From Hyalangium minutum (lineage in GTDB: Bacteria; Myxococcota; Myxococcia; Myxococcales; Myxococcaceae), in the NCBI RefSeq assembly GCF_000737315.1, contig NZ_JMCB01000017.1, positions 124,001 to 188,000 on the forward strand: 64,000 nucleotides of DNA, read 5' to 3'. Positions 1,110-35,314 of this stretch are shown piece after piece; the first letter of the stretch is position 1; every line of letters starts with the position of its first letter. The notes under the pieces are model-generated. The model did no database searches. It was not told the origin of the DNA and saw only the letters and a list, made by a program, of their open reading frames with translations. Both the position numbers and the translations under genes were made by a program.

Positions 1110-2426
1110 CTACTCCAGCCGCTCCACGATGAGCGGCCGAGGCGCCGGAGCCTGCGGGCCGAAGCGGTACGCCGCCAACAGCCGCGCCTTCACGTCCTGG
1201 AGGGGGCCCGCGTCATTATAGTGCACGCGCACCACCGGCTCGCCTGCCTTCACCGGCTCGCCCACCTTGCGCAGCAGCGTGAAGCCCACCGCTGGATCAA
1301 TCCGGCTGTCCACCCGCTGCCGTCCCGCCCCCAGCGCCACCGCCGCCAGCCCCACCGCCTCCGTGTCGATGCCCGTGACGAAACCGTCACCTGGCGCCAG
1401 CACGTCCGCCGTGGCCTTCGCCTGCGGCAACCGGCTGTAGTCATCAATGGCGAGCGGATCGCCGCCCTGCACCTGGACAATCTCCTTGAGCTTGCGCAGC
1501 GCGCTCCCGTCGTCCATGGCGCGCTGCAACAACTGCCGCGCCTGAGCCTCGTTCGCCGCCTTGCCGCCGAGCACGAGCATCTCCGCCGTGAGCGCCAGCG
1601 TCACCTCGGTGTAGTCCGCCGGTGCCTTGCCCCGGAGCATGTCCACCGCCTCAATCACTTCGAGGGCGTTGCCCACCGCGCGTCCCAGCGGCTGATCCAT
1701 GTCCGTGATGAGCGCCGTCACCTTGCGCTTCATCTGCGTGCCGATGCCGATCATCGTCCGGGCCAGGGCGCGCGAGTCCTCCAAGCGCTTCATGAAGGCG
1801 CCACTGCCCGTCTTCACGTCCAGCACGAGCGCGTCGATGCCCTCCGCCAGCTTCTTGCTCATGATGGAGCTGGCGATCAGCGGCAAGCAGTCCACCGTGG
1901 CCGTCACATCCCGGAGCGCGTAGAGCTTCTTGTCCGCGGGAGCCAGCGTGGCCGTCTGCCCGATGAGGCAGGCCCCCACATCCCGCACGAGCCGCCGGTA
2001 GTCCGCCACCGAGAGGTCCACCTTGAAGCCAGGGATGGACTCCAGCTTGTCCAGGGTCCCGCCCGTGTGCCCCAGGCCCCGGCCGGAGATCATCGGCACG
2101 GGCACGCCACAGGCCGCCGCCAGCGGCGCCAGGCTCAGGGAGACCTTGTCCCCCACTCCACCCGTGGAGTGCTTGTCCACCTTGATGCCGGGCGTCTCGG
2201 AAAGGTCGAGCACCTCGCCAGACTCGAGCATGGCCTGTGTCCAGGCGCCCAGCTCCACGGGGTTGAGCCCCTTGAAGAAGACGGCCATGCACATGGCGGA
2301 CATCTGGTAGTCCGGCACGTCACCGCGGGTATAGGCGGCAATGAACTCGCGGATGGAGTCCGGATCCAACTCCCGGCCATCCCGCTTGGCTTTGATGAGT
2401 TCGTAGGGTCTCACGCTTGGGGCCAT
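1110..2426 (-). CDS. deoA: Thymidine/pyrimidine-nucleoside phosphorylase (start may be GTG 2414)
   Basis: DKHSTGGVGDK, SGRGLGHTGGTLDKLESIPG, SIMSKK motifs. Confidence 0.95.
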   Translation of the reverse strand: MAPSVRPYELIKAKRDGRELDPDSIREFIAAYTRGDVPDYQMSAMCMAVFFKGLNPVELGAWTQAMLESGEVLDLSETPGIKVDKHSTGGVGDKVSLSLAPLAAACGVPVPMISGRGLGHTGGTLDKLESIPGFKVDLSVADYRRLVRDVGACLIGQTATLAPADKKLYALRDVTATVDCLPLIASSIMSKKLAEGIDALVLDVKTGSGAFMKRLEDSRALARTMIGIGTQMKRKVTALITDMDQPLGRAVGNALEVIEAVDMLRGKAPADYTEVTLALTAEMLVLGGKAANEAQARQLLQRAMDDGSALRKLKEIVQVQGGDPLAIDDYSRLPQAKATADVLAPGDGFVTGIDTEAVGLAAVALGAGRQRVDSRIDPAVGFTLLRKVGEPVKAGEPVVRVHYNDAGPLQDVKARLLAAYRFGPQAPAPRPLIVERLE

Positions 2427-2473: not shown

Positions 2474-3697
2474 ATGACCCGAACCCTCCGCCTCTCTGCC
2501 CTGGCCCTTGCAGCGCTCCTCGGCGCCTGTAAGAAGGAAGAACCCCCTCCGGCTGCCCCGGCGACGCCCCCCGCCCAGCAGCAGCAGCCCCAGGCGGAGG
2601 CCAAGCCCGCAGAGCCCCCGAAGGCCAAGACCCACAAGATTGGCCTCGTGGTGGACCTGGGCGGCCGTGGCGACCACTCCTTCAATGACGCAGCGCTCCG
2701 TGGCCTGGAGACCTGGGCGGCCGGCAAGAAGTACGAGGGCGGCCAGTACGTCGCCGCCTCCCCCGAGGAGATCAAGGCGTCCATCACCTCGGACCTGACC
2801 AACCTGCAGCCCCCCATCACCCCGCAGCCCATCGAGCCGCAGGTGATCCAGAGCAAGTCCCCCGAGGACTATGAGCCCAACCTGCAGCTGCTCGTGGACC
2901 AGGGCGTGGACCTGACCATCGGCAACGGCTTCCTGCTGGAGCCCGCAGTGGAGACGGTGGCCAAGGCCAACCCGAACGCCAAGTTCCTCCTGGTGGACAG
3001 CGTGCTGCTGGACGCGGAGAACAAGCCGTACAGCCTGCCCAACGTCCGCACCGTCACCTTCAAGGAGAACGAGGGCAGCTTCCTCGTGGGCGCGCTGGCG
3101 GGTCTGGTCTCGAAGACGGGCAAGGTGGGCTTCGTGGGCGGCATGGAGGTGCCCATCATCAAGAAGTTCGAGGCGGGCTACCGCGCGGGCGTGAAGACCA
3201 CCAACCCCAAGGCCGAGACGGGGCTGATGGCCGTCTACACCGGCAGCTTCAACAACGTGGCCGCCGGCAAGCAGGTGGCGCAGGACCTCATCAAGAAGGG
3301 CGCGGACGTCATCTTCCAGGCGGCCGGCGCGGACGGCCTGGGCGTCATCCAGGCGGTGAAGGAGGCCAAGGCGGCCGGTAAGAATGTCTACGTCATCGGC
3401 GTGGACTCGGATCAGTCGCACGTGGCGCCCGAGGTGGTGCTCACCTCCATGCTCAAGCACCTGGATCTGGCCATCTACACCGCGTCGCGCGACCTGGCCG
3501 AGGGCAAGTTCGCCGCCGGTGACGTGACGCTGGGCCTGAAGGAGGGCGGCGTGGGCTACGCCGACGTCCGCGTGGACTTCCCGGGCAAGGCCGAGGCCCT
3601 CCAGAAGGTGGAGGCCCTGCGCCAGCGCGTCATCTCCGGTGAGATCCAGGTCCCCGCTTCCAAGGAAGAGCTCTCCTCCTTCAAAGCCACGCCCTGA
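2474..3697 (+). CDS. BMP-family ABC substrate-binding lipoprotein (nucleoside-binding type)
   Basis: Lipobox LLGAC; GGRGDHSFND, F..NEGSFLVG, GFVGGM, VIGVDSDQ motifs. Confidence 0.92.
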   Translation: MTRTLRLSALALAALLGACKKEEPPPAAPATPPAQQQQPQAEAKPAEPPKAKTHKIGLVVDLGGRGDHSFNDAALRGLETWAAGKKYEGGQYVAASPEEIKASITSDLTNLQPPITPQPIEPQVIQSKSPEDYEPNLQLLVDQGVDLTIGNGFLLEPAVETVAKANPNAKFLLVDSVLLDAENKPYSLPNVRTVTFKENEGSFLVGALAGLVSKTGKVGFVGGMEVPIIKKFEAGYRAGVKTTNPKAETGLMAVYTGSFNNVAAGKQVAQDLIKKGADVIFQAAGADGLGVIQAVKEAKAAGKNVYVIGVDSDQSHVAPEVVLTSMLKHLDLAIYTASRDLAEGKFAAGDVTLGLKEGGVGYADVRVDFPGKAEALQKVEALRQRVISGEIQVPASKEELSSFKATP

Positions 3698-5208
3698 TCT
3701 CCCTTCGTCACATCTCCAAGCGGTTCGGCGGCGTCCAGGCGCTGGATGACGTGTCCCTCGACATCGGTGCGGGCGAATTGCTCGCGCTGGTGGGCGAGAA
3801 CGGCGCGGGCAAGTCCAGCCTGATGAACGTCCTCTATGGGCTCTACCACCCAGACGAGGGCGACATCGTCCTGGACGGCAAGCCGATCCGATTCAAGAGC
3901 CCCCGGGACGCCATCGCCCGGGGGATCGGCATGGTGCATCAGCACTTCATGCTGGTGCCCACGCTCACCGTGGTCGAGAACGTGGTGCTCGGCCGCGAGC
4001 CCCAGCGGTGGGGGCGGTTGGACTTGGAGCGCGCCTACTCCGAGGTCTCCGCCACCTGCCAGCGCTTCGGCTTCCAGTTGGATCTGCGGGCCCGGGTGGA
4101 CACGCTCACGGTGGGCTCGCAGCAGAAGGTGGAGATCGTCAAGGCGCTCCACCGGGGCGCGAAGGTGCTCATCCTCGACGAGCCCACTGCCGTGCTCACG
4201 CCCCAGGAGTCCGAGGACTTGTTCCGCGTGGCCCGCGGGCTGAAGGACCAGGGGCACACCGTGGTCTTCATCAGCCACAAGCTGCGCGAGGTGCTCAGCG
4301 TGGCCGAGCGCATCGCCGTGATGCGGCGCGGCAAGCTCGTGGCCGAGGTGAAGGCGAAGGAGACCACCGCCAGCGAGCTGGCCAACCTGATGGTCGGCGA
4401 CGCGCGCACGGGGCCCGCCGTGGTGGAGCCCTACCACCCGCCCACGGGCGCGGTGGTGCTGTCGGCCAGGGACCTGAAGGTGGGCGTGGAGGATGGGAGC
4501 ACGGCGCTCAACGGCGTGACGCTCGATGTGCACGCGGGCGAAATTGTCGGCATCGCCGGAGTGGACGGCAACGGGCAGCGGGAGCTGGCCGAGGTGCTCA
4601 CCGGCCTGCGCAAGCTGGGGTCCGGAGAGGGCTCGCTGCTGGGCAAGCCTCTGGCGAACCTGAACCCGCACGAGGCCCGGCGGCGCGGGGTGAGCCACGT
4701 GCCCGAGGACCGGCTGCGTCGCGCGGTGGTGAAGGGCATGAGCGTGGAGGAGAACGTGGCGCTCGGCCGGCAGGGGCTGCCGCCCTTCGCCAAGGGCCCG
4801 TGGCTGGACTTCAAGGGCCGCCGCGAGCGAACGAAGAAGCTGCTAGGCGCGTACGACGTACGGCCTCCGGATCCGCTGCTGGCCGTGCAGGCGCTCTCGG
4901 GCGGCAACCAGCAGAAGGTGGTGGTGGCGCGCGAGCTGGACGCCGAGCCCAAGTTCCTGGTGGTGGTGCAGCCCACGCGCGGCCTGGACATCAGCGCGGT
5001 GGCCCAGGTGCACTCCCGGCTGCGCGAGGAGCGAGCCCGAGGCGTGGGCGTGCTGCTCATCTCCCTGGATCTGGAGGAAGTGCTGACCCTGTCGGATCGC
5101 ATCTATGTGCTCTTCGAGGGCCGCGTGACAGGAACCTTCACCCGGCCCGAGTTCGACGAGCGGGAGATTGGCCGGCGCATGCTGGGAGCGGGAGCGGGCC
5201 ATGAGTGA
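3694..5208 (+). CDS. CUT2-type ABC ATP-binding protein with two NBDs; probable CTG start overlapping the upstream stop (ORF track gives GTG 3751)
   Basis: GENGAGKS, LDEPT, LSGGNQQK; conserved ISKRFGGVQAL segment lies upstream of 3751; in-frame stop at 3640-3642. Confidence 0.9.
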   Translation: MISLRHISKRFGGVQALDDVSLDIGAGELLALVGENGAGKSSLMNVLYGLYHPDEGDIVLDGKPIRFKSPRDAIARGIGMVHQHFMLVPTLTVVENVVLGREPQRWGRLDLERAYSEVSATCQRFGFQLDLRARVDTLTVGSQQKVEIVKALHRGAKVLILDEPTAVLTPQESEDLFRVARGLKDQGHTVVFISHKLREVLSVAERIAVMRRGKLVAEVKAKETTASELANLMVGDARTGPAVVEPYHPPTGAVVLSARDLKVGVEDGSTALNGVTLDVHAGEIVGIAGVDGNGQRELAEVLTGLRKLGSGEGSLLGKPLANLNPHEARRRGVSHVPEDRLRRAVVKGMSVEENVALGRQGLPPFAKGPWLDFKGRRERTKKLLGAYDVRPPDPLLAVQALSGGNQQKVVVARELDAEPKFLVVVQPTRGLDISAVAQVHSRLREERARGVGVLLISLDLEEVLTLSDRIYVLFEGRVTGTFTRPEFDEREIGRRMLGAGAGHE

Positions 5209-6313
5209 GCGCCTGCGCTCGGCAGTACCGTCGATTCTCTCCGTGCTCCTCGCGCTGGTGGTGTGCTGGGTGGCCATCGCCCTCACGCGCGACCTGAGCA
5301 CCGCGGCGGAGGCCTACCTCCAGATGCTCTATGGAGGCATCGGCCAGATCCCCAAGTACCTGGAGACCGGGAGCGGCGCGCTCCTGGCCCGCCCACTGGG
5401 CGAGTCCGCAGGCAAGGCGGCCCTGCTGATCCTCACGGGCCTGTCGGTGGCGGTGGCGTTCAAGGCCGGTCTCTTCAACATCGGCGCGCAGGGGCAGATG
5501 GTGGTGGGCGCCCTGGCGTCGGCGGTGGTGGGCGCGCAGATCGCCCTGCCCTCCGTCGTGCACATTCCCCTGGCCATCCTGGCCGCCGCGGTGACGGGAG
5601 CGGCGTGGGCCCTCATCGCTGCGGCACTCAAGCTGTGGCGCGGCGTCCATGAAGTCATCTCCACCATCATGCTCAACTGGGTCGCGGTGAGCTTGGTGGA
5701 CAACTGGCTCGCGGTGGGCCCGCTGCGCGCGGTGGCCAGCGGCGGCCACTCGGTGGCGGGCACAGCGGAGATCCACCCCACGGCTCAGTTTCCCCGGCTG
5801 CTGGCGGACATCTCCCGGCTCAACCTGGGCTTCCCGGTGGCGCTGGCCGTGGCTCTGTTCGTCTGGCTGTGGCTCACCCGGACGCGGCGTGGCTTCGAGA
5901 CGCAGGCGGCTGGACTGGGCCCCGACGCGGCTCGGGCTGCGGGCATCTCCGTGAAGCAGCGCGCGGCCGAGGCCATGGCGCTCTCCGGCGCGCTGGCGGG
6001 CATGGCGGGCGCCGTGCTCGTGCTCGGCACCGAGTACCGCTACCCCGGCTCGCTCGCGGCGCCGTACGGCTTCGACGGCATCGCCATCTCGCTCATCGGC
6101 AACAACAACCCGCTGGGAGTGACGATCACCGCGATCTTCTTCGGAATCCTCCGCGCTGGCGGCACGCGCATGCAACTGCTGGGCGTCCACAAGAGCTTCC
6201 CCGAGCTCATCCAGGGCCTGGCGCTGCTCTTCGTGGCGGGCCGGCTGGTGTGGCTGACGCTGCTGCGGAAGCGCAAATCCCAGCCCGCCTCCACCGAGGT
6301 GCCCCGTGCTTGA
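5201..6313 (+). CDS. Nucleoside-type ABC transporter permease
   Basis: GLFNIGAQGQ, EVISTIMLN, GFDGIAISL motifs; ATG 5201 overlaps the ATPase end. Confidence 0.92.
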   Translation: MSERLRSAVPSILSVLLALVVCWVAIALTRDLSTAAEAYLQMLYGGIGQIPKYLETGSGALLARPLGESAGKAALLILTGLSVAVAFKAGLFNIGAQGQMVVGALASAVVGAQIALPSVVHIPLAILAAAVTGAAWALIAAALKLWRGVHEVISTIMLNWVAVSLVDNWLAVGPLRAVASGGHSVAGTAEIHPTAQFPRLLADISRLNLGFPVALAVALFVWLWLTRTRRGFETQAAGLGPDAARAAGISVKQRAAEAMALSGALAGMAGAVLVLGTEYRYPGSLAAPYGFDGIAISLIGNNNPLGVTITAIFFGILRAGGTRMQLLGVHKSFPELIQGLALLFVAGRLVWLTLLRKRKSQPASTEVPRA

Positions 6314-7235
6314 GATTCTCGAGGCGCTCCTCTTCTCCACCCTGGACGCGGCCCCCGCGCTCATCTTCGCCACCCTCGGAGGCGTGCTCTCCGAGCGCGC
6401 GGGAGTGGTGAACGTCGGCGTGGAAGGCCAGATGCGCGCCGGGGCTTTCGTCGCCGCCGTGGCTGCCCTCTCCATGCCCACGCCCCTGGCTGTCATCGTG
6501 GGGATGGTGGCGGGCGCGGCGCTGGCCTCCGTGCACGGCTACCTGAGCATCCGCTGGCGCTCGGATCAGGTCGTCTCTGGCATGGCCATCAACCTGGTGG
6601 CGCTCGCCGGGGGCACCTTCCTCCTCGAGGCCCTGTTCAGCCCCAACGGAACCCCGCCCATCGAGCAGCTCCCGCGCTGGCAGCTGCCGCTGATCCAGGA
6701 CATCCCCCTGCTGCGGGCCCTCTCCGACCACCCCGGGCTGGCGTACCTCGCGCTGGTGCTGCCCTTCGTCTTCCACGCCGTGCTCCACCACACCCCGATC
6801 GGCCTGCGCCTGCGCGCCGTGGGCGAGAAGCCTCACGCCGTGGCCACCCTGGGCCTGAGCGTGCCGCTGCTGCGCTGGGGCGCGGTGCTCGGAGGCGGCC
6901 TGCTGGCGGGCCTGGGCGGCGCGGTGCTCTCGACTGCCGTGCTGGATCGCTTCGAGCAGCACACCCCTGCGGGCCTCGGCTTCATGGCCCTGGCCGCCAT
7001 GGTGTTCGGCCGGTGGACGCCCCTGGGCGCCTTCGGAGCCGCCTCCTTCTTCGCCTTCGGCAACGCCCTGCGCATCGGCCTGGCCTCCAGCGCCCCCGAG
7101 ATTCTGGATGTCATCCCCCAAGGCTTCCTGCTCGCCCTGCCCTACTTCCTGACGCTGCTCCTGCTGGCCATCCAGGGCCAACGCAGCAGTGCTCCTGCGG
7201 CGCTCGGCACCCCCTATGAGCAGGAGTCCCGCTAG
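6306..7235 (+). CDS. Nucleoside-type ABC transporter permease
   Basis: SERAGVVNVGVEG, GLRLRAVGE, GLGFMALAA..FGRW motifs. Confidence 0.92.
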   Translation: MLEILEALLFSTLDAAPALIFATLGGVLSERAGVVNVGVEGQMRAGAFVAAVAALSMPTPLAVIVGMVAGAALASVHGYLSIRWRSDQVVSGMAINLVALAGGTFLLEALFSPNGTPPIEQLPRWQLPLIQDIPLLRALSDHPGLAYLALVLPFVFHAVLHHTPIGLRLRAVGEKPHAVATLGLSVPLLRWGAVLGGGLLAGLGGAVLSTAVLDRFEQHTPAGLGFMALAAMVFGRWTPLGAFGAASFFAFGNALRIGLASSAPEILDVIPQGFLLALPYFLTLLLLAIQGQRSSAPAALGTPYEQESR

Positions 7236-7252
7236 CCCCACCTGCCAGTGAG

Positions 7253-7300
7253 GGGTCAAAATCACCCGGGTCAGGTTTGACCAGGATTCAAGATTGACCC
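7253..7300. promoter_or_regulatory. Nested inverted repeats of GGTCA(A)/(T)TGACC; candidate enhancer-protein binding sites
   Basis: GGGTCAA 7253-7259 pairs with TTGACCC 7294-7300; GGTCA 7269-7273 pairs with TGACC 7278-7282; about 130-180 bp upstream of a -24/-12 site. Confidence 0.45.
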
Positions 7301-7429
7301 ACCTCTTCCTGGCTCTCCGGCCTCGTGCTCTCTGGGTGGGGGCTCCAGCCCCCAATGTAAGTCCTCGACATTGTTGATGAAAAAAACCAGCCTCTCGCGA
7401 AACGTGAAAACCCGTTGGACCGCGAATGT

Positions 7430-7445
7430 AGGCACGCATCTAGCA
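7430..7445 (+). promoter_or_regulatory. Sigma-54 (-24/-12) promoter candidate
   Basis: AGGCACGCATCTAGCA: GG-N10-GC spacing, close to the TGGCACG-N4-TTGCW consensus; 72 bp upstream of ATG 7517. Confidence 0.6.
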
Positions 7446-7516
7446 GGTCAAATTATGCAGTAGGGAACTTCTCCTGCCCGGCTACCCATGAGGTGGCTCT
7501 CGGTGGAGGTCGCGAG

Positions 7517-8074: not shown

Positions 8075-8091
8075 CGAACCGGGCGTAGCGG

Positions 8092-8766
8092 CTAGAAGCG
8101 CCAGCCCACGCCCATCAAAGCTTCGAGCGTGAAGTACGCGTCGCTGCGTCCGCGGCGGCCCGCGTCCGGGAAGAGGGAGGGCCCCATCCGGACGTTGAAG
8201 TTCACCTCCAGGTTGCGGTCGATGAAGTACTCCAGCCCTCCGCCCACGAGCAGGGGGAAGACGGGGCCTCCGCCCGAACCGAAGTAGACGTGGAACGGAA
8301 CATCCACCCCGAGGTTGAGCATGATGGCGCTGCCCACGGGAATCCCAGCCACGAGCGACACCGGCAGCGCCAACCCCACCTGGGTGCCCCCCTCATGAAA
8401 GTAGAAGATCGGCCCCGGCTGGAAGACGAGCGCCAGCGAGGCCTCCTGCATGCGCGCGAGCATCAGCCGCACCCAGGCCTGGAGCTTGATGCCGGGCTCC
8501 ACCACCTCGACGAGGCCTTCTTGGCCCCAGTTGAAGGTGAACTTGCCGCCGAGATCGAGCTTGGACGTACTGCCGTGGAGCACGCCCACGGAGAGGCCCG
8601 GCCAGCCGATCTGGGCGGAGAGGACGTTCTGGTTGGCGCCCACGGTGTCACCCGCGAGCAGGGACCAGCCCTGTCCGCGGCCGTAGGAGCCCTCTTCGTC
8701 CTGCGCGAGCGCGGCCGTGGAGGCGAGGACCCAGCAGAGGAAGAACCCAGGGACGAGACGCTTCAC
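8092..8766 (-). CDS. Hypothetical outer-membrane beta-barrel protein
   Basis: GTG start with signal peptide (…STAALA), Gly/aromatic alternating strands, C-terminal GWRF. Confidence 0.65.
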   Translation of the reverse strand: MKRLVPGFFLCWVLASTAALAQDEEGSYGRGQGWSLLAGDTVGANQNVLSAQIGWPGLSVGVLHGSTSKLDLGGKFTFNWGQEGLVEVVEPGIKLQAWVRLMLARMQEASLALVFQPGPIFYFHEGGTQVGLALPVSLVAGIPVGSAIMLNLGVDVPFHVYFGSGGGPVFPLLVGGGLEYFIDRNLEVNFNVRMGPSLFPDAGRRGRSDAYFTLEALMGVGWRF

Positions 8767-8833: not shown

Positions 8834-10588
8834 TCAGGCAGGCTGCCCGCGATCACGCGCGAGTGCCACGAAGGCCTCCATGAGCGTCTGGAGCCGCGCC
8901 TCGGCCCGCGTGCGCGCCTGGGCCACGGACTCTCCAGCGGTCAGCGTCTCCTTCAGCTCGAAGTAGTACTTGATCTTGGGCTCGGTGCCCGAGGGCCGCA
9001 GGGTGACACGGTGGCCGCCCTCCAGCTCGTAGGCGATAACATTCGAGGCTGGCAGGGTGATGGGCTCGACCTTGCCGCCCGAGCGGGTCTCGCGCTTCTG
9101 GTAGTCCTTGGTGCTGCGGACGGCGTAGGCACCGATGCGCTCGGGGTGGGACTGGCGGAAGCCCTCCATGATGCGCGCGATGGTCTGCGCGCCCTCGGCG
9201 CCCTTGAAGGTGAAGTTGCGCTGGCCTCCGACGAAGAGGCCGTGCTTGCGCTGGATCTCCTCCAGGTAGCCAAGCACCGTCGTCCTGCGCGACTGGCACC
9301 ACGCTGCCAGGTCCGCGAACACCAGCGCCGCGCTGATGCCGTCCTTGTCGCGCACCACGGTGCCCACCGTATAGCCGAGCGCCTCTTCGTAGCCGAAGAC
9401 GAACTGGATGTTCTCGCTGCGCTCGCGTTCCAGCGCGCGGTTGGCGATCCACTTGAAGCCGGTGAGCACCTCGTCATACGCGGCGCCGAGGTCATGGGCG
9501 ATCTGCCCGAGCTGCACCGAGGAGACAATCGTGGTGGCCACGTGAGGCCGGGCCCGCTTCGTGCCCTGGGTGAGGAGGTAGTGGCCCAGCAGCACGCCCA
9601 CCTCGTTGCCGGTGAGCATGCGCAGTGAGCCCTGCGCGTCCCGCGTCATCACCGCGAGCCGGTCCGCATCCGGATCATTGGCGAGCACCAGCTCCGCCTT
9701 CTGGCGCTCGGCGGCGGCGGTGGACAGGTCCATCGCGCCAGGCTCCTCCGGGTTGGGGAAGCGCACCGTGGGGAAGGTGCCATCCGGCTGCTGCTGCTCG
9801 GCCACGACATGGAAGCGCGGAAAGCCCGCCGCCTTCATCGCCTTCTCCATCCACACGCCACCCACGCCATGCATCGCCGTGTAGACGATGGACAGCGTGT
9901 CCGAGCCCTTCCCGTACATCCGCAGTCCGAGGATGGCCTTCAGGTAGGCCTCACCAATGTCCTCGGAGAGATCCTTCCAGAGGCCCTTGGCACGGGCCTC
10001 GGCGGGGCTGAGCAGCTTCACCTGGTTGGCGGGCTCGACCGCGTCGATGGCGGCGGCAATGCCCTTGTCGTGCGGCGGGATGATCTGCGCGCCGTTGCCC
10101 CAGTAGACCTTGTAGCCGTTGTACTCGGGCGGGTTGTGGCTCGCGGTGACCATCACCGCTGCGGCGGCCTTCAGGTGCAGCGCGGCGAACGCCGTCAGCG
10201 GCGTGGGCGCCAACGTGGTGAACACCAGCGCCGGAATGCCCTCGGCGGCGAGCACGCCGGCAGTGTCCTCGGCGAACTCGGCGCTCATCCGCCGGCCATC
10301 GCGGCCCACCACCACGCCCCGGGTGGCGACGTCCGGCACCTGGGCCTTGAGGTAGCGCGCCAGCCCCGCCGTGGTGCGGCGCACCACCGCCCGGTTCATC
10401 CGGTTGGGCCCCGCGCCAATCACTCCGCGCAGGCCCGCCGTGCCGAACTCCAGATTGCCCGCGAAGCGGTCGGCCAGATCCGCCGTGTCCTCGCTGGCGA
10501 GCACGTTCGCCAGTTCCTGCGCAGTAACGGAGTCCGGATCCGCCTTGCGCCACGCTTCTGCCTGCTCCCTCAGCCCGGTGTTGCTCAT
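8834..10588 (-). CDS. PGM2-type alpha-D-phosphohexomutase-family enzyme; probable phosphopentomutase in this context
   Basis: FGTAGLRG, TASHNP phosphoserine loop, DPDADR metal loop, YEEALG, RPSGTEPK. Confidence 0.9.
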   Translation of the reverse strand: MSNTGLREQAEAWRKADPDSVTAQELANVLASEDTADLADRFAGNLEFGTAGLRGVIGAGPNRMNRAVVRRTTAGLARYLKAQVPDVATRGVVVGRDGRRMSAEFAEDTAGVLAAEGIPALVFTTLAPTPLTAFAALHLKAAAAVMVTASHNPPEYNGYKVYWGNGAQIIPPHDKGIAAAIDAVEPANQVKLLSPAEARAKGLWKDLSEDIGEAYLKAILGLRMYGKGSDTLSIVYTAMHGVGGVWMEKAMKAAGFPRFHVVAEQQQPDGTFPTVRFPNPEEPGAMDLSTAAAERQKAELVLANDPDADRLAVMTRDAQGSLRMLTGNEVGVLLGHYLLTQGTKRARPHVATTIVSSVQLGQIAHDLGAAYDEVLTGFKWIANRALERERSENIQFVFGYEEALGYTVGTVVRDKDGISAALVFADLAAWCQSRRTTVLGYLEEIQRKHGLFVGGQRNFTFKGAEGAQTIARIMEGFRQSHPERIGAYAVRSTKDYQKRETRSGGKVEPITLPASNVIAYELEGGHRVTLRPSGTEPKIKYYFELKETLTAGESVAQARTRAEARLQTLMEAFVALARDRGQPA

Positions 10589-10636
10589 GTCCCGCCTCCT
10601 CGTCCCCTTGGCTCCGGGGTGCCCCGCGTGACGCGT

Positions 10637-11029
10637 TCAGGTGTAGTCGGTGAGCTTCTTGCGCGTGGGGCCGCCCTTGGGCTTGTCCTTCTTGCCCTGG
10701 CACTCCACGCAGTACTCCACATAGGGCATGGCCTTGAGCCGGCGGTACGGCAGCTCGTCGCCACACTCCTCGCACTCGCCGAAGCTGTCCGGATCGTTGC
10801 GCAGCTTGCCCAGCGCCTTCACCACCCGCGCCAGCACGCCGTCCATGTTCCGGTTCCGGCTGGACGCAATCGCCTGCATCATCTCGTTGAGCGGCTGCTC
10901 GTCCTCGTCGCCGCCCACCTTGCTGTCATCCGTCCGGTTCGGCTCGATCTTCGCTGGCGTCTTGCCGGTCAGCTCGGCATGCAGCGCCAGCAACAGCTGG
11001 CGCATCTCGTCTCGCTGGGCGTCCGTCAC
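10637..11029 (-). CDS. DksA/TraR-family C4 zinc-finger protein
   Basis: CEECG…RRLKAMP…CVECQ; N-terminal coiled coil. Confidence 0.88.
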   Translation of the reverse strand: MTDAQRDEMRQLLLALHAELTGKTPAKIEPNRTDDSKVGGDEDEQPLNEMMQAIASSRNRNMDGVLARVVKALGKLRNDPDSFGECEECGDELPYRRLKAMPYVEYCVECQGKKDKPKGGPTRKKLTDYT

Positions 11030-11053
11030 CGCGCTCCCCCGAGGTGGCTAGGG

Positions 11054-11992
11054 TCAGTACTTCCCGGTCGACTTCTGGCCGGTGATGATGGCCACGGAGG
11101 CCGAGGCACCGATGCGGTTGGCGCCCGCCTGGATCATCTTCATCGCGTCCTCGGCCGAGCGCACGCCACCCGAGGCCTTCACGCCCACGTCGTCACCCAC
11201 CACCTTGCGCATCAGCGCGATGTCCTCGGCGGTGGCGCCTCCGGAGCTGAAGCCCGTGGACGTCTTCACGAAGGCAGCCCCGGCAGCCTTGGAGAGCGCG
11301 CAGGCGCAGATCTTCTCCTCAAGGTTGAGCTGGCTCGTCTCCAGGATGACCTTGACCGGGTGCGGGCGGCTGGCCTCCACCACCATGGAGATGTCCTTGA
11401 GCACCAGCGCGTAGTCCTTCGCCTTCAGCGCGCCGATGTTGATCACCATGTCGATTTCCTTCGCGCCGCAGCGGATGGCCTCACGGGCCTCGAAGGCCTT
11501 GGCGCTGGGCAGCGCCGCCCCGAGCGGGAAGCCCACCACGGCGATGGGCACCGTCTTGGAGCCCGCCAGAATCCGGGCCGCCAGCGCCACGTTCACCGAG
11601 TTCACGCACACCGTGGCGAACCCGTGCTTCCGGGCCTCCTCGGACAGCTTGATGACCTCTTCGCGGCTGGCCTCGGGCTTGAGCAGCGTGTGGTCGATGT
11701 ATGGGGCGATGTCCGCGCTGGTCCGGATGGACTCCGGAGAGATACGGGCCGCGCCGGCCTTCACCGCGCCCACGGTGCCGCAGCTGTCCACGTTCGGGCA
11801 CACGTCGCACGAAGGCGCACATTCCTTGGAGGCCATAGCGTCCCCCGGCTTGCTGGCGCCAGTGGCCTCGCGGGCGGAGGGCCCGGGCGAGGTGGTGCAG
11901 GGCTGCTCCTTGCCTGCTCGGAGGGCTTGCATCCTACGGCGGACACGGTCAGCGATCTCGTCGACGACTTGGGTCATCTCGTCAGCGGCCAT
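11054..11992 (-). CDS. deoC: 2-deoxyribose-5-phosphate aldolase with about 90-aa N-terminal extension
   Basis: [45 protein letters not shown]; ATG 11992 (the 737-aa ORF upstream is antisense shadow). Confidence 0.95.
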
Positions 11993-12100
11993 GGAGCCGG
12001 ATGTAGCCCAGAAGGGGGTCCCTCGGGAAGCATTCGGACAAGGGCAGCTTGGGTGCTTGCCGAGTGCCGCACAGGGGGTGGCAGGCGCTAGAGTCTCCCT

Positions 12101-13378
12101 GTGATGTCCTTCCCCCGGCTGCTCAGCGTCCTCCTCGTCCTCCTCACGGCCTTCTCCAGCGGGGCGCAGCCTGCCCCCGCTCGCCCGGCCCCGGGTAAAC
12201 CGCTCACGGTGTATTTCTTCGATGTGGGCCAGGGCGACGCGGCGCTCATCGTCTCGCCCACGGGCAAGACGGTGCTCATCGACGGAGGGCCGCCGGAGGC
12301 TGGGGAGCACCTGGCGTCCCGGATCAAGCAGCTCGTCCACGCGCCACTGGACCTGGTCATCCTCACGCATCCGCACCTGGACCACCTCGGGAGCCTGAGG
12401 GATGCGCTGCAGGCGGTGGGGGCCAAGCGCTTCATGGATCCGGGCTTTGACCACCCAAGCGAGGCCTATCGGAACCTGCTCGAGTTCGTGGGCAAAGAGG
12501 TGGACCAGGTGATGACGCCCGAGCCGAATCCGCAGGCCCCGGACACGTTCCTCACGGTGGGGCTCGGAGAGGGCGTGGTGCTCACGGTGTACTGGCCTCG
12601 CTTCCCGCGCGAGCCGTTCCTGAAGAACACGCGCTCGGATGCGAACTCCAACTCGATCGTGACGCGGCTCACCTATGGCAAGACGGCGTTCTTCTTCACG
12701 GGAGACAGTGAGAAGGACACCGAGGAGGCTCTGCTGCGCCAGCGCACGGACTTCACCTCCACTGTGCTGAAGGTGGCGCACCACGGCGGGAAGCACTCCT
12801 CCACGAAAGAGTTCCTGGAGGCGGTGAAGCCCAAGGCCGCCGTCATCTCCTGCAGCCATGACAACGAGTACGGCCACCCCACTGCGGAGGCGCTCGAGCG
12901 GCTGTCCGCCGTGGGCGCCAAGGTGTTCCGCACGGACCTGAACGGCGAAGTCCAGGCCGTGAGCGATGGCGTCAACGTCACCCTCCAGGCCGAGAAGGGC
13001 AGCCGCTCGAAGCTCACCGTTCCGGGCGAGGTGAAGCCGCTGGGGTCGAGTTCCAGCCCTGCTCCCGCGGCCGCCCCCACCCCGAAGCCCACTGGGGGCG
13101 CTGCCGCCACGCAGCCTCCGAACAAGCCCGGCGGTGAGACGGTGCAGACCGGGTACAAGCCTCCCGTCTCGGCTCCGGCGCCCGCTCCTGCTCCCAACAA
13201 GGCTCAGGCACCTGCTCCCTCGGCCGGTCAGAAGTTCGTGAGCCTCAAGGGCAGCGCGGTCTTCCACCGGGAGGACTGCGGCACCCTCAAGCGGGCGAAG
13301 ACAAAGGAGCGCACGGTGTACACATCCCGCGCCACCGCCGCGCGCGAGCGCCGGCCCGCGGAGGACTGCAAGCCATGA
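12101..13378 (+). CDS. Secreted ComEC/Rec2-type MBL-fold metallohydrolase (putative nuclease) with C-terminal Ada-like domain
   Basis: Signal peptide; DVGQGDA, THPHLDH, FTGD, KVAHHG, NEYGHP all intact; FHREDC…RPAEDCKP tail. Confidence 0.85.
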
Positions 13379-14724
13379 GCTCGCGCCTGTGGCCCTTGCT
13401 GGCCCTGCTGTTGGCCGCCGCGTGCAAGGAGCCTCCTCCGGCCCCGCCCGCGCCGCCGCCGGCCACGCGCCCCGCCGCTCCGAAGCACTTTTTGGGCAAC
13501 GCGCCGGACGGGAAGCTCCACATCTACTTCCTCGACGTGGGCCAAGGAGACTCCGCGCTCATCGTCTCGCCCGAGGGGCGCACCGTCCTCGTCGACACGG
13601 GCCCGGCCACGGCGGTGAACCACCTGGTGAACCGGCTGCCGGAGCTGCTCGCCGCGCGGCTGGATCTGGTGGTCCTCACCCACCCGTCGCCCGAACACTA
13701 CGGCACGCTGAGCGCGGTGCAGAAGATCGCGGATCCGCGCCGGCTGCTCGAGCCGCAGCTGCCCGAGACGCCCTCGGATTACGACGCCCTGCTCACGACG
13801 CTGGGCTCGTCGGGAGTGGAGATCTTCTCGCCCGCGCCCAACCCGGCCCAGCCTCAGGAGCTGACGCGCCTACCGCTGGGCAAGGGGGCGGAGCTGACGG
13901 TCCTGTGGCCGCGTGCGCCCACCGAGCCCTTGGTGCAGCTGCAGGGGGAGAAGCGCGCGCAGCATGAGGCCAACTCTATCGTCCTGCGCCTGACCTATGG
14001 GAAGACCTCGGTGCTCTTCGTGGGCGACGCTCGCGCTGAGACGGAGGCCGCGCTGCTGAAGCGTGGGGCGGAGCTGAACTCCACGCTCCTGAAGGTGGGT
14101 GGGCATGGGGCGGACTCGAGTACCACCCAGGAGTTCCTCCGGAAGGTGAAGCCGCAGGCGGCCATCATCAGCGTGGGCGGAGGCAACAAGCTCGGGGTTC
14201 CGGCGCAGGCCGTGCTGACCCGGCTGAAGGAGGAGAAGACGGCCCTCTTCCGCACCGATCAATACGGCGAGGTGCACGCGATGAGTGATGGCACGCAGTT
14301 CGTGCTCACCACGCAGAAGCTCGCGCCGGGCGAGGCCACCAACACCCAGCATGTCTTCGATGCCCCGGAGGAGCAGGCGCTGCAGGTTCCGACGCCTTCC
14401 GTACCCGTGGCCGAGAAGCCAGAGCCGAAGGTGGTGCCCGCGAAGGCCGTCGTCCCCAAGGCGAAGGAGGGCGAGGACCTCTCGCGGTTCGGCAAGGTGG
14501 TGGACATCGACACGCTGGGCGCCAAGGAGCACGGAGGCCGCCCGGAGAAGAAAGGGGCCCCAGCGGGAGGCGAGAAGTACTTCGCCAGCAAGAATCGGCC
14601 GATTTTCCACAAAGCGAGCTGCCGCAGCGTCAAACAGATCTCCGATGCGAACCTGCGTGAGTACAGCTCGCGCGAAGCTGCGCTAAAGGACAACAAGACG
14701 CCCGCCAACGACTGCAGGCCATGA
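13375..14724 (+). CDS. Lipoprotein ComEC/Rec2-type MBL-fold paralogue with degenerate metal site
   Basis: Lipobox LAAAC; DVGQGDS kept, but THPSPEH, KVGGHG and NKLGVP replace the metal-binding motifs; ATGA overlap with the previous gene. Confidence 0.82.
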
Positions 14725-14733
14725 GGATCGCCC

Positions 14734-14973
14734 ATGCGTAAGGCCACCGTGGACCGCTTCGAGGAAGAGCTGGCCGTGCTCATCGTCGACGGGCAGCAGG
14801 TGACCTGGCCCCGCGCCAACCTGCCTGCGGAGGTGCACGAGGGTGACGTGATCGATCTCGACACGGGGACGATCGACACGGAGGCCACCTCGGAGCTGCG
14901 CGAGCAGGTGCGGCAGGCCCGGAAGCAGGCGAAGAAGAAGAAGCCCGCGCCCACAGGCAACTTCGACCTCTGA
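14734..14973 (+). CDS. DUF3006-like small protein
   Basis: ATVDRFEEELAVL…LPAEVHEGDVI pattern; this family is commonly next to ComEC-like MBL genes. Confidence 0.8.
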   Translation: MRKATVDRFEEELAVLIVDGQQVTWPRANLPAEVHEGDVIDLDTGTIDTEATSELREQVRQARKQAKKKKPAPTGNFDL

Positions 14974-19639: not shown

Positions 19640-20308
19640 CTAGCGGCGCGGTCCGAGGCCCGCCTTCTTGCGCGCCTCGAGCAGCTTCTGCACGTCCGCG
19701 GGCGCCAGCGGCTGCACCGTCCCCAGCGAGCGTGCAGCCATGAGGATCTTCGCGTAGTGCTCCACCAGCTCCATCCGGAGCAGGGCCTGCGTCAGATCCT
19801 CACCCAGCGTGATGACGCCGTTGCCCGACAGCAGAAACGCGTCGTACTCGGAGGCGGCGCTCTCCACGCGCTTCGCGCCCTCGGGATCCTTGGGCATCGC
19901 GCGCTGCAGCGTGGGCACGCGATCTCCCAGCGACACCACCATCTCCGGCAGCGCGATGGGCGACAGCTCCTGCCCCACCAGCCCGAACGCCGTGGCCACC
20001 GGCGGGTGCGCGTGCAGCACCACCTGAGCCTCCGGCCGCCCCCGGTACACCGCCAGGTGCAGGTCCAGCTCGCCGAACGGCTTGCGCCGCCCCTCCAGCA
20101 CCTTGCCCTGCGGATCCACCACCAGCAGCGACGCGTCGTCGATGTCCCGCTTGGATACCGCCGTGCACGTAATCAAGAACCGCTCGCCCTTGAGGCGCAC
20201 GGACACGTTGCCGTCGTGGTTGGCCACCCAGCCGTTCGCGTGCAGACGGTGGGAGGTGCTCACCACGTCCGCCCGCAGCTTCGGCAGCGGCACGAAGCCC
20301 TCGCTCAC
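19640..20308 (-). CDS. Class II aldolase/adducin-family protein with altered active site
   Basis: GNVSVR, ELDLHLAVY, HAHPP; LLSGNG where FucA-type enzymes have LxxHG. Confidence 0.85.
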   Translation of the reverse strand: MSEGFVPLPKLRADVVSTSHRLHANGWVANHDGNVSVRLKGERFLITCTAVSKRDIDDASLLVVDPQGKVLEGRRKPFGELDLHLAVYRGRPEAQVVLHAHPPVATAFGLVGQELSPIALPEMVVSLGDRVPTLQRAMPKDPEGAKRVESAASEYDAFLLSGNGVITLGEDLTQALLRMELVEHYAKILMAARSLGTVQPLAPADVQKLLEARKKAGLGPRR

Positions 20309-20574
20309 GCATCCACCTCGTCCACCACGCCGACGATCAGCGAGCGGATGGGCAGCGTCTTGTCGCCGAGGATCTGCCGCACCCCGCCGCCCTCGCGCAT
20401 GACCAGCACCACGTCCCCCGGCCCCGCCGAGGAGGTGTGGTCCACCGCGATGAAGCTCTTGCCCAGGGGCTGCTGCTTCTCATCCAGCGGCTGCACCACC
20501 ATCAGCTTCCGGCCCGCGAAAGCCGGGTGCTTCAAGGTGGAGGTGACGCTGCCCAGCACCTTGCACAGGTTCAT
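20305..20574 (-). CDS. EutN/CcmL-family BMC vertex (BMC-P) protein
   Basis: KVLGSVTST.K…KLMVVQP…AVD…AGPGDVVLV…IVGVVD; ATGA overlap. Confidence 0.92.
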   Translation of the reverse strand: MNLCKVLGSVTSTLKHPAFAGRKLMVVQPLDEKQQPLGKSFIAVDHTSSAGPGDVVLVMREGGGVRQILGDKTLPIRSLIVGVVDEVDA

Positions 20575-20834
20575 ACGTCCACCGAGTCCACGATGCCGAC
20601 AATCGCCGCATCCACCGGCACGAACCACGGATCCAAAGCGAGCGCCGCCTCGCGGCTGCCCACCAGGTACACCAGCTCGCCCCGGCCCGCGGACACCGTG
20701 TCCACGGCCACCTCGGGGCTGCCCATGGGCTCCCGCTGGTGATCCAACGGCTGGACCACGAGGAGCCGCTTGCCCTCGAGGCCCTCATACTTCTGCTCGC
20801 AGACCACCGTGCCGAGGACGCGTCCCAGGTACAT
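20571..20834 (-). CDS. EutN/CcmL-family BMC vertex (BMC-P) protein
   Basis: MYLGRVLGTVV…KRLLVVQP…AVDTVSAGRGELV…GSREA…DAAIVGIVD. Confidence 0.93.
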   Translation of the reverse strand: MYLGRVLGTVVCEQKYEGLEGKRLLVVQPLDHQREPMGSPEVAVDTVSAGRGELVYLVGSREAALALDPWFVPVDAAIVGIVDSVDV

Positions 20835-20843
20835 AGGCGCCTG

Positions 20844-22691
20844 TTACATCGCTCCCGAGGTGAGGACCAGGGGGATCTGCAGCTCGACCTCCTCGGTGCC
20901 GTCATCCAGGGTGAACTTGGGGAACACCATCCGCTTGGCGCTCTTCTTGATGCAGTCGCCCACCGGCGAGGTATCCAGCTCCTTGCGGTCCAGCTTCGTG
21001 TCCTTCACCACGCCCGAGGTGCCCACCGTCGTCACGAGCGTCACCTTCCCGCCCTTGAACTTGGGGTTCTTGCGCAGCTCCGTCTCCACGCAGCCCTGGA
21101 AGGCGCCCTGGGACTTCTCCACCACCTTCATCACGTCCTCGGCCGGAGGCCCACCGCTGCCCGCCGCGTCTTGGGCGGCGACTTCGGCGTCCTTGCGCAC
21201 CGCAGGGGCCACGTCCGTCTTCGACGCGTCCCCGAGGAGCTGCTGCAGTTCCTCGGCGGACTTGCCCGTCTCCGGCGTCGCGGGCTTCTCTTCCGCGGAT
21301 CCCCCGGGTTTCGGCGCGGTGCCACCCTGCGCCGGCTTCTTCTCTGGAGCCGTGGGCGTGGGAGCCGGGGTGGGCGCCGGCTTCTTGTTCCCGAGCAGCA
21401 GGTCCTTCAGCTCGCTGCGGCCCTCGCCCGAGAACAGCCAGGACTTCTCCACCGGCTTGCCCTGGGCGTCCACCGTCTTCATCTTCGGCACGAAGTTCAG
21501 CGTGTCCAGCGCGAACACCCCGCCGCCGATGAGCAGGATGGGCAGCATGATGAACAGCGCCACCTTCCACGCCGGGTTGCGGCGGGTGACGCCCGACTTC
21601 TTCATGAAGTAGCGCGTGTCCTCCACCGGCTTCTTGGTGTCCGGCTTGCTGCCTCGCACCGACGCCAGCGGATCCGGGCTCTCGCCCACGGCCGCCAGAG
21701 GCGACTCGCTGTCGGGCGGCGGCTCGTTCTTGTCGGGCAGATCCAGATCCGAGAACAGATCATCGCCCATCCCCGCCTTGCTGGCCGCGCCATTCGAGCG
21801 GGACTGCTTCTGCGCCCGGGGCTGATCCGGGGCCGGCTCATCCCACGCAGGCTGATCCTCCTGCCCCTGGGCCTGCTGCTCGTCCCACTGCTGCTGCTCG
21901 TCCTGCCCCTGGGCCTGCTGCTCATCCCACTGCTGCTGCTCGTCCTGCCCCTGGGCCTGCTGGCCGTCCCACGCGGGCTGATCCTCCTGCGGGGGCTCCT
22001 CCCACTGGGCCTGCTGGCGCTGCGACTGGCGCTGCGGCTGCGCGGCGGCGGGCGGATCCAGATCCCACGGCTCGCGGGCCGCAGGCGCCTGCCCCACCGT
22101 GGTGGGCACATCCTCCCAGGCGTTGTCCTCCTGCTGCGGCGCAGGGGTGTTGGTGCGCTGGCCCCGCACGGCCACGGTGGCGGGCTCGGGCGGCAGCGCG
22201 GGCGGAGGCTCGGGCGGTGCGGCAGGAGGCGCGAACAGGCCCGCCAGCTCGGGGATGTCCGAGCCGCGCTTCCAGTCCGCCATGCCCTGCTGCCAGAAGA
22301 AGCTGCGCGCGTTGATGGCGCCGCTCTCCATGAGCCCTTGCAGGCCGGCCTCGTCCAGTGGGCCTTCCTGCTTGCTCTTCACCATCACGAACCAGGGAGC
22401 CGCGGCCGGGCGCGCCGGGGCGGCCTTGGTGGGCTCGTCCTCCCACGGGTTGGCGCTGGCCGGAGCCGCCGCGGGCTCCGGAGCGGCCGCAGCCATGGCG
22501 CGCTCCTGCTCGCGGATCCGCTCCACGTCGGCGAGAGACACCACGCGGGTGCTCTCTTCCATCTCCATGGGCGGGCCCTGGACGGAGATGACGTTCTGGC
22601 AGTTCTTACAACGGACCTTGACGGTCTTCCCGCGGACCTTCTCGTCCGCGATGGAGTACCGCCTCTGGCAATTGTCACAAGAGAAGTTCAA
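20844..22691 (-). CDS. GltJ/AgmX-like protein: zinc ribbon, GYF domain, low-complexity linker, TM helix, TonB_C-like C-terminal domain
   Basis: CDNC…VRCKNC; EGP…FWQQGMADWK; TM segment VALFIMLPILLIGGGVFAL; C-terminal FQGCVE…GDCI…FPKF. Confidence 0.8.
   Translation of the reverse strand: MNFSCDNCQRRYSIADEKVRGKTVKVRCKNCQNVISVQGPPMEMEESTRVVSLADVERIREQERAMAAAAPEPAAAPASANPWEDEPTKAAPARPAAAPWFVMVKSKQEGPLDEAGLQGLMESGAINARSFFWQQGMADWKRGSDIPELAGLFAPPAAPPEPPPALPPEPATVAVRGQRTNTPAPQQEDNAWEDVPTTVGQAPAAREPWDLDPPAAAQPQRQSQRQQAQWEEPPQEDQPAWDGQQAQGQDEQQQWDEQQAQGQDEQQQWDEQQAQGQEDQPAWDEPAPDQPRAQKQSRSNGAASKAGMGDDLFSDLDLPDKNEPPPDSESPLAAVGESPDPLASVRGSKPDTKKPVEDTRYFMKKSGVTRRNPAWKVALFIMLPILLIGGGVFALDTLNFVPKMKTVDAQGKPVEKSWLFSGEGRSELKDLLLGNKKPAPTPAPTPTAPEKKPAQGGTAPKPGGSAEEKPATPETGKSAEELQQLLGDASKTDVAPAVRKDAEVAAQDAAGSGGPPAEDVMKVVEKSQGAFQGCVETELRKNPKFKGGKVTLVTTVGTSGVVKDTKLDRKELDTSPVGDCIKKSAKRMVFPKFTLDDGTEEVELQIPLVLTSGAM
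21860..21961. repeat. 42-bp tandem repeat (about 2.4 copies) encoding QAQGQDEQQQWDEQ
   Basis: Units start at 21860, 21902 and 21944. Confidence 0.9.
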
Positions 22692-35310: not shown

Positions 35311-35314
35311 GCAC

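Follow-up and report, generated by a model that had tools for sequence, protein, structure and literature searches.

What is an enzyme of deoxynucleoside breakdown doing with 91 additional residues at its N-terminus, a few kilobases from genes for a protein shell? The shell of the Haliangium ochraceum (HO) bacterial microcompartment (BMC) serves as the main BMC model for structural and engineering work, yet its native function is still called enigmatic. Here, we analyse a 64-kb stretch of the Hyalangium minutum DSM 14724 genome (GCA_000737315.1, contig JMCB01000017.1; hereafter the window), in which the gene deoC encodes a deoxyribose-phosphate aldolase (DERA) with a long N-terminal extension. 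As judged from sequence and gene order, this DeoC probably is the signature cargo that produces aldehyde in the H. minutum HO microcompartment; its N-terminal helix would load it, the adjacent nucleoside-scavenging genes would feed it, and its acetaldehyde would pass to the aldehyde dehydrogenase (AldDh) of the main shell locus. Sutter et al, 2021 (PMC8217296) reported that some HO genomes carry a distal pfam01791 enzyme with an N-terminal extension resembling an encapsulation peptide (EP), proposed it as possible HO BMC cargo and suggested nucleic-acid catabolism. Because that proposal covers it, the central claim of a previous sequence-only reading of the window, namely that this DeoC is cargo of a myxobacterial shell, is a published hypothesis. 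The cargo idea has been in print since 2021; the text and supplements of that study contain no sequence anatomy, Cys motif, gene-order evidence or nucleoside-cluster context. New here are the anatomy of the extension, gene-order data, a corrected start codon and a nucleoside-scavenging gene cluster. An EP-bearing DERA as the aldehyde-generating enzyme of the HO organelle would make its physiology directly testable, and shell engineering would gain, in the DeoC helix, a targeting sequence that is both native and HO-compatible.

The aldolase behind the extension is complete. It belongs to the class I DERAs by NCBIfam TIGR00126 (263 bits, cut-off 117), and Pfam DeoC (PF01791) matches residues 98-296 with 49.6 bits (cut-off 23.8). 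An end-to-end alignment pairs residues 92-312 with residues 2-224 of the 224-residue Bacillus halodurans DERA (6D33) at ~60% identity; because this alignment starts at residue 92, the extension measures exactly 91 residues, in line with the roughly 90 estimated earlier from the translation. In an AlphaFold2 (AF2) model built on 118 homologues, the barrel superposes on 6D33, 3NGJ and 5DBU with TM(target) values of 0.93-0.96 and a root-mean-square deviation of ~1.4 Å, as expected of a complete (beta/alpha)8 barrel. The catalytic aspartate D181 (in EIDMV), the Schiff-base lysine K243 (in FVKTSTGF) and the relay lysine K272 (in GVKASGG) are invariant in the 118 sequences, and the C-terminal Y312 is conserved in at least 90% of them. 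The three invariant residues match E. coli D102, K167 and K201 by motif, as was described for the DERA of a sugar-phosphate-utilisation (SPU) microcompartment, SPU6 (PMC11585597). Judged by its domain and its catalytic residues, H. minutum DeoC is intact and probably a working deoxyribose-5-phosphate (dR5P) aldolase.

Whether the extension is seen at all depends on the start codon. The public gene model (P0003, 292 residues, 100% identity, GCA_000737315.1) begins at M21 and loses most of the N-terminal helix. In five genomes, the amino acids of residues 5-20, upstream of M21, are conserved and their codons varied synonymously; R19 is encoded by CGT, CGC, AGG, CGG or AGA with no change of amino acid. 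The codons of the extension thus bear the mark of purifying selection. The GC content at third codon positions (GC3) stays high back to 11992, which is also the start that maximises GC3, and more than 100 homologues are annotated with the full N-terminus. Because of the synonymous codon variation above M21, together with the replacement of M21 by L or I in homologues, we take the ATG at 11992 as the real start; on this sequence evidence the longer start is correct and the public one is wrong. Automated start calls routinely miss the N-terminal extension of BMC-associated DERAs (PMC11585597), and H. minutum deoC provides a concrete case of database start-codon errors that hide targeting peptides. 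A spurious 54-residue open reading frame is annotated across the true 5′ end of deoC (11930-11992, minus strand).

How closely does the extension resemble an EP? The AF2 model places a helix at residues 3-28, with hydrophobic residues at positions 6, 9/10, 13/14, 17, 21 and 24. Its hydrophobic moment is 0.59, compared with 0.34 ± 0.13 in shuffles, and that of the family-consensus helix is 0.73, a value attained by 0.9% of shuffles. The core of the helix is strongly conserved (R16 and R20 invariant; V17, R18 and R19 nearly so). Residues 33-59, in contrast, have AF2 confidence (pLDDT) below 50 and differ among homologues in both sequence and length, and the extension as a whole is kept in more than 100 homologues. 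The terminal helix with hydrophobic residues at helical spacing and the flexible linker after it, both proposed in the sequence-only reading, are thus borne out by the model, the moment and the homologues, and amount to the anatomy of an EP: a terminal amphipathic helix on a flexible, poorly conserved linker. Canonical EPs (PduP, PduD, EutC, EutE, AldDh) share this build and the pattern [LIV]xx[LIV][LIV]xx[LIV]; the DeoC helix differs from them in being longer (~25 residues), unusually arginine-rich (RVRRR) and followed by a conserved Cys-rich element. Closer to the compartment in question, the AldDh enzymes of HO main loci carry N-terminal EPs comparable to the DeoC helix ('LDEKKIEEIVAKVLERL' and 'LDEARIRELVERVVERL'), and in two HO type I main loci from metagenomes the AldDh N-termini 'TLDEKKIEEIVAKVLERLGG' and 'SLDEARIRELVERVVERLSQ', which both lead into a linker of low complexity, are of the same helix type.

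Searches with a profile of the extension only (residues 1-88) returned DeoC fragments and nothing else, with 23 matches in a word-indexed search and 17 in an exhaustive HMMER search of 1.84 billion representatives. Four apparent fusions to other domains (P0134, P0138, P0141 and P0143), which would have made the extension a mobile module, were rejected as assembly chimeras because of their abrupt junctions on contigs of 500-850 bp.

The shell genes of the window form a tight operon, 7.6-8.8 kb upstream of deoC, in the order Zn-ribbon/GYF protein, BMC-P, BMC-P and class II aldolase. The two BMC-P genes noted earlier at about 8.3 kb do lie 8.3 kb from the DeoC start, and both belong to PF03319. 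According to Sutter et al, 2021 (PMC8217296), an HO type I satellite consists of two BMC-P genes plus a pfam00596 aldolase, and the window contains exactly this module. The same study lists an HO main locus for Hyalangium DSM 14724, DB31_6364 to DB31_6369, in which its supplements identify DB31_6364 (PduT-like) and DB31_6369 as BMC-T genes. The earlier suggestion that the genome be checked for BMC-H and BMC-T genes is answered in part: these two BMC-T genes are on record, and the called genes of the 64-kb window contain neither type. A search with an H. ochraceum BMC-H sequence as query gave 120 near-identical metagenomic hexamers among the matches listed, with the H. minutum main locus not among them. 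It also gave two metagenomic HO type I main loci with the gene order BMC-Tdp, BMC-H, BMC-P, AldDh and BMC-T, one of which clusters with Kofleriaceae members; this is the layout expected of an HO main locus, in which BMC-H, a third BMC-P and BMC-T accompany an AldDh that bears an N-terminal EP.

Gene order in relatives brings satellite and deoC together. In Hyalangium rubrum (DeoC ~88% identical) the satellite lies 4.7 kb upstream of deoC, and in GCA_044229415.1 (79% identical) 3.6 kb upstream. Both share the layout of the window: the Zn-ribbon/GYF gene, two BMC-P genes and the class II aldolase are followed by a few genes, a DUF3006 gene and metallo-beta-lactamase-fold (MBL) genes, beyond which come the divergent deoC, the DksA-like gene, the PGM-family gene and, further on, the Bmp transporter; thymidine phosphorylase is also present in H. 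rubrum. Two metagenome-assembled genomes (MAGs) go further, with BMC-P, BMC-P, aldolase and EP-bearing DeoC contiguous, an arrangement that adds to what PMC8217296 describes. In the Myxococcales MAG YF1.bin66 (L003), where the Zn-ribbon/GYF gene heads the series, EP-DeoC follows the aldolase after an 11-nt gap with a GGAGGAG ribosome-binding site, and its N-terminus reads MGIRPEELDEIAERVAEALRRRL...EEPC...C-x3-C-x2-C-x6-C. In an unclassified bacterial MAG (L007), BMC-P, BMC-P, class II aldolase, EP-deoC and thymidine phosphorylase share one 7-kb contig, the last two at 4410-7000. Thymidine phosphorylase also directly follows EP-deoC in three Kofleriaceae MAGs (L015, L027 and L032, at ~10001-12800).

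A scan of species-representative genomes widens this picture, with 80 DeoC loci among the matches listed; Myxococcus, Corallococcus and Stigmatella are not among these matches, which carries no weight as absence. BMC-H or BMC-P genes occur in the fetched flanks of 22 of the 61 extended DeoCs and of none of the 19 plain ones (Fisher p=8e-4). The extension is missing from the plain loci and from all solved DERAs compared; in many of the 80, a helix, a Cys/His knuckle and an AGAxR segment precede the barrel start IDHTLLKP. MAGs of Chloroflexota and Actinomycetota have this same DeoC architecture within shell loci, beside AldDh, BMC-H and BMC-P genes. The DeoCs of Spirochaetota and Christensenellales have the helix only; Arthrobacter, Kocuria, Bdellovibrio and Ornithinibacillus encode DeoC without an extension.

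The nearest characterised counterparts are the SPU DERAs, all of which have a ~70-residue N-terminal extension that is absent from non-BMC DERAs and consists of a 25-30-residue amphipathic helix and two low-confidence strands; the SPU6 enzyme cleaves dR5P and was insoluble until its extension was deleted (PMC11585597; Commun Biol 2024). Hyalangium DeoC resembles the SPU6 Chloroflexi DERA in being class I, in an extension of ~70-90 residues that starts with a 25-30-residue amphipathic helix, and in a start that is often mis-called; SPU6-type loci (L021, L058 and others) also have a four-Cys knuckle and an AGAxR segment. The loci differ, however: SPU deoC lies inside the shell locus beside an RpiB-like partner, whereas Hyalangium deoC lies 8 kb from a satellite, with no RpiB neighbour and within a nucleoside-catabolism cluster. 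Cys spacing differs as well (C-x3-C-x4-C-x3-C in SPU, C...C-x3-C-x2-C-x5-C in Hyalangium), and the myxobacterial linker is longer. By analogy, then, the Hyalangium system works like SPU but is not SPU by locus definition. A further parallel comes from Hodarchaeales, archaea with shells of Myxococcota descent to which a Flav-DERA that bears an EP is recruited (PMC12747264; bioRxiv 2025). There too, DERA is the cargo of a sugar-phosphate or DNA-scavenging compartment with a Myxococcota connection and carries an extra N-terminal module besides the EP; the archaeal module is a flavoprotein domain, that of Hyalangium a 14-residue Cys knuckle with a segment resembling strand beta8.

What lies between linker and barrel? 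The four clustered cysteines that the sequence-only reading had pointed to, C58, C62, C65 and C71, are invariant in the 118 homologues, so that four conserved ligands stand close together, and C32, which that reading did not mention, is a fifth invariant cysteine. The pattern extends across several phyla: all but two of ~45 AGAxR-bearing extensions have at least four Cys or His in the preceding 32 residues. Its spacing varies with lineage, from C-x3-C-x4-C-x3-C in Chloroflexota SPU-type loci and C-x2-C-x3-C-x3-C in Actinomycetota and in Bryobacterales and other Acidobacteriota to C-x-C-x3-C-x3-C in Pyrinomonadaceae, C-x2-C-x2-C-x2-C in some unclassified MAGs and C-x2-HH-x2-C in Heliomicrobium and some Acidobacteriota. 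Neither Pfam nor the PDB yielded a relative of the knuckle segment. The knuckle is probably a metal site, for which zinc and Fe-S are not distinguishable by sequence.

The segment that follows, in which G80, R83 and P86 are invariant in the 118 sequences, had been said to echo the C-terminal part of the enzyme itself. Segments picked by regular expression and anchored in hhalign show register-specific similarity, a test that is circular, and we replaced it with an unanchored comparison, in which a post-linker profile built on 47 diverse extended DeoCs was set against one of the entire DERA domain. The best match is the alpha7-beta8 region (EDAxxMIxAGAxRIGAS; 23 columns, P=4.5e-6, hhalign probability 87%), and the echo therefore holds. 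In a term search of PMC11585597 and of the text and supplements of PMC8217296, neither cysteines nor metals came up in connection with the DERA extension, and the knuckle with its pseudo-beta8 segment appears to be a new feature, absent from both descriptions. The combination occurs in Myxococcota, Acidobacteriota, Chloroflexota, Actinomycetota, Armatimonadota and Heliomicrobium. Our tentative suggestion, which we would not rate as the likelier outcome, is that the Cys4/Cys2His2 knuckle and the pseudo-alpha7/beta8 'AGAxRI' segment form an undescribed, cross-phylum metal-binding adaptor of encapsulated DERAs with a function of its own; it may be a metal or redox switch that governs how cargo condenses or docks to the shell, or an Fe-S centre for the luminal electron relay. 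These extensions exceed ordinary EPs in both length and degree of structure, for which the conserved Cys element may be the reason.

Can the extension be explained in other ways? If translation began at M21 or M53, the 'helix' would be untranslated 5′ region, which would agree with the 292-residue product in the public record and with the lack of a strong Shine-Dalgarno sequence ahead of ATG 11992; the conserved residues 5-20 with their synonymous codon changes, the L or I in place of M21, the more than 100 full-length homologue calls, the high GC3 back to 11992 and the documented annotation error make this very improbable. DeoC might instead be a cytosolic DERA whose extension serves regulation or oligomerisation, as a redox or metal switch or as a coiled coil, with the BMC-P genes nearby by chance or through shared regulation. 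The extension profile matches only designed coiled coils in the PDB, insignificantly, and the fact that the extension aggregates the SPU6 enzyme is by itself no proof of shell loading. Two relatives have no BMC-P genes within 10 kb of deoC, so that the linkage of satellite and deoC is frequent, not universal. This last point also counts against DeoC as HO cargo, as do several others: the called genes of the 64-kb window include no PF00936 (BMC-H/BMC-T) and no RpiB (PF02502), which leaves the locus outside the SPU definition; the H. minutum main locus enters our analysis through the literature; DERA and AldDh have EP helices that are alike in character but not in strict register; and AF2 with 118 sequences does not model the knuckle (pLDDT below 50-70), so that it is the residue pattern that speaks for metal binding. 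Nevertheless, homologous extensions sit on DeoCs inside shell loci of several phyla, L003 and L007 have EP-DeoC directly after BMC-P/BMC-P/aldolase, no extension is present on plain DERAs and HO main-locus AldDh has a similar helix, and we regard a cytosolic role as unlikely. Myxobacteria also make encapsulin nanocompartments, to which the extension could in principle target DERA in place of a BMC. Encapsulin targeting peptides, however, are typically short C-terminal motifs rather than N-terminal amphipathic helices, the genes called in the window include none that is capsid-like, and the linkage that we find is to BMC-P, BMC-H and AldDh genes. Deoxyribose-phosphate aldolase does come up in a survey of encapsulin systems (PMC8346489); even so, we consider this destination barely credible.

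The nature of the metal site invites a rival of its own, in which the knuckle would bind an Fe-S cluster with a redox role, for instance in a relay that re-oxidises luminal NADH via PduS/PduT-like proteins. We keep such a role open because of ferredoxin-like spacings in some lineages (L031 and L072 have C-x2-C-x2-C-x2-C with P next to it, L067 has C-x2-C-x2-C-x3-C), the PduT-like BMC-T of the H. minutum main locus, the NADH-recycling problem of HO loci, which are without the alcohol dehydrogenase and the PTAC that cofactor recycling requires, and the fusion of archaeal SPU-type DERAs to a flavoprotein domain. Nonetheless, the Cys spacing differs between lineages, and in several of them the cluster gives way to C-x2-HH-x2-C, whose ligands are more usual for zinc; among in-locus DERAs, some (Spirochaetota) carry the helix without a single cysteine; the DERA reaction requires no redox cofactor; and no Fe-S family was matched in Pfam or the PDB. 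We therefore find the Fe-S assignment rather doubtful and favour a small structural zinc site, because Cys4 interchanges with Cys/His sets and the spacing varies.

How would DeoC act as cargo of the HO compartment? Those sequence-level predictions of that reading that were examined have held (EP anatomy, conservation, satellite linkage and SPU homology), and from them we infer encapsulation, flux through the pathway, metal binding and the role of the knuckle, in the following order. DNA or nucleosides would be taken up with the help of ComEC-type MBL hydrolases and the Bmp-type ABC transporter; thymidine phosphorylase would release deoxyribose-1-phosphate, and the PGM-family mutase would convert it to dR5P. 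Within the shell, DERA would cleave dR5P, yielding glyceraldehyde-3-phosphate plus acetaldehyde, and the EP-bearing AldDh of the main locus would convert the acetaldehyde to acetyl-CoA. Helix 3-28, on its disordered linker, would co-aggregate DERA with other EP-bearing cargo, bind the inner face of the shell, or both. Between linker and barrel, the knuckle (C58, C62, C65 and C71, with C32) would bind metal, and together with the helix-strand mimic of alpha7-beta8 it could constitute a conserved adaptor specific to microcompartment-associated DERAs. The positions of all features are collected in Table 1.

Table 1. Features of the H. minutum window discussed in the text (position 1 is the first nucleotide of the window).
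Feature	Position	Strand	Remarks
deoC, 312-residue DERA with 91-residue N-terminal extension	11054..11992	(-)	Start ATG 11990-11992
Amphipathic helix, putative EP, residues 3-28	11909..11986	(-)	AF2 helix, pLDDT 77-88
M21 codon, start of the public 292-residue model	11930..11932	(-)	L or I at this position in homologues
C32, fifth invariant Cys at helix end (EEPC[TS])	11897..11899	(-)	Invariant in 118 sequences
Variable disordered linker, residues 33-57	11822..11896	(-)	Low pLDDT, varies among homologues
Cys-rich knuckle C58-x3-C62-x2-C65-x5-C71, putative metal site, residues 58-71	11780..11821	(-)	
Conserved 'h-x-x-AGAxR[IVL][GS]' segment, residues 72-91	11720..11779	(-)	Resembles the enzyme's own alpha7-beta8 unit
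Complete DERA TIM barrel, residues 92-312 (D181, K243, K272, Y312)	11057..11719	(-)	
Zn-ribbon/GYF protein upstream of BMC-P pair	20844..22691	(-)	Pfam
BMC-P (EutN/CcmL) pentamer gene 1	20571..20834	(-)	PF03319, E=2.8e-27
BMC-P (EutN/CcmL) pentamer gene 2	20305..20574	(-)	PF03319, E=7.2e-25; 4-nt overlaps with neighbours
Class II aldolase (pfam00596) of HO type I satellite	19640..20308	(-)	PF00596, E=1e-40
DksA/TraR-type C4 zinc-finger gene	10637..11029	(-)	PF01258; directly downstream of deoC
584-residue phosphohexomutase-superfamily gene, candidate phosphopentomutase	8834..10588	(-)	Four PGM_PMM domains
Thymidine/pyrimidine-nucleoside phosphorylase	1110..2426	(-)	NF004490, 579 bits vs cut-off 269; Pfam
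Bmp/PnrA-type ABC transporter (binding protein, ATPase, two permeases), candidate nucleoside importer	2474..7235	(+)	
Two ComEC-type MBL-fold genes and DUF3006, divergent from deoC, candidate DNases	12101..14973	(+)	Pfam

From the genes around deoC we infer a route for scavenging DNA and deoxynucleosides that would end in dR5P. The DksA/TraR-type gene stands between deoC and the PGM-family gene in L094, L095, L097 and L001 as well, and the order deoC, dksA-like, PGM-family gene is kept in relatives. The 584-residue protein would supply dR5P as a pentomutase; it matched no NCBIfam equivalog above cut-off. The Bmp/PnrA-type transporter is conserved in L094, L095 and L097, and the MBL/MBL/DUF3006 trio is divergent from deoC in L094, L096 and L097. 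The two paralogous MBL proteins amount to ComEC/Rec2's C-terminal MBL (nuclease) domain minus its membrane channel, the first of them has a hydrophobic N-terminus that is a putative signal peptide, and the trio is a candidate set of extracellular DNases feeding the pathway. The DksA/TraR-family protein beside deoC may be a dedicated regulator.

The satellite itself has features of its own. Immediately upstream of the BMC-P pair, four genomes encode a Zn-ribbon/GYF protein of 550-675 residues (besides the window, L003 at 6564-8591, L094 at 2274-4073 and L097 at 3546-5198), in which an MJ0042-type zinc ribbon at the N-terminus and a GYF domain are followed by a long middle part of low complexity and, at the C-terminus, by a conserved domain. 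The class II aldolase was considered as a second EP carrier. In the window, its C-terminal 'ADVQKLLEARKKAGLGP' was rejected as an EP, being found in all homologues; the protein ends at the family-wide '...LLEARKKAGLGPRR' with no added tail. The aldolase of L007 (~3700-4400), in contrast, continues with an extra linker and amphipathic helix (AVDAVRAVVEQEVRRAL), likely a C-terminal EP. Because the C-terminal stretch of the window enzyme is family-wide, unlike the extra helix of L007, the former probably has no EP, and encapsulation of aldolase II may be a trait of some lineages, H. minutum not among them.

Among the extended DeoCs, those of Acidobacteriota (Pyrinomonadaceae, Blastocatellia, Bryobacterales and Acidiferrales) have the full extension and no shell genes within 10 kb (L010, L013, L018, L023, L044, L046, L059, L060, L063, L065, L066, L071, L075 and L080; DeoC match at ~10001 in most loci). 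By analogy with HO genomes, these enzymes may be cargo encoded away from the shell genes, perhaps those of the ACI-type BMC that is specific to Acidobacteria. The ACI locus reportedly encodes a protein of ~80 residues with an EP and three conserved cysteines, which might be a free-standing relative of the module. If the adaptor suggested above is real, unlinked EP-DERA genes would mark deoxyribose as a substrate of both HO and Acidobacterial (ACI-type) organelles.

Elsewhere in the window, a 208-residue RNase H/RVT_3 protein (25250-25876, plus strand) is encoded beside a CT398-like coiled-coil zinc-ribbon gene, a pair that recurs near the satellite locus in L097. An island of lower GC content (62-65%, against 68-71% elsewhere) spans ~32000-40000 and includes a 777-residue AAA/STAND-like ATPase with a match (E=8e-46) to PDC-M26A, one of the candidate defence families of PADLOC. 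After it comes a protein with DUF2357 and a PD-(D/E)XK nuclease, and the whole looks like a horizontally acquired, McrBC-like defence module.

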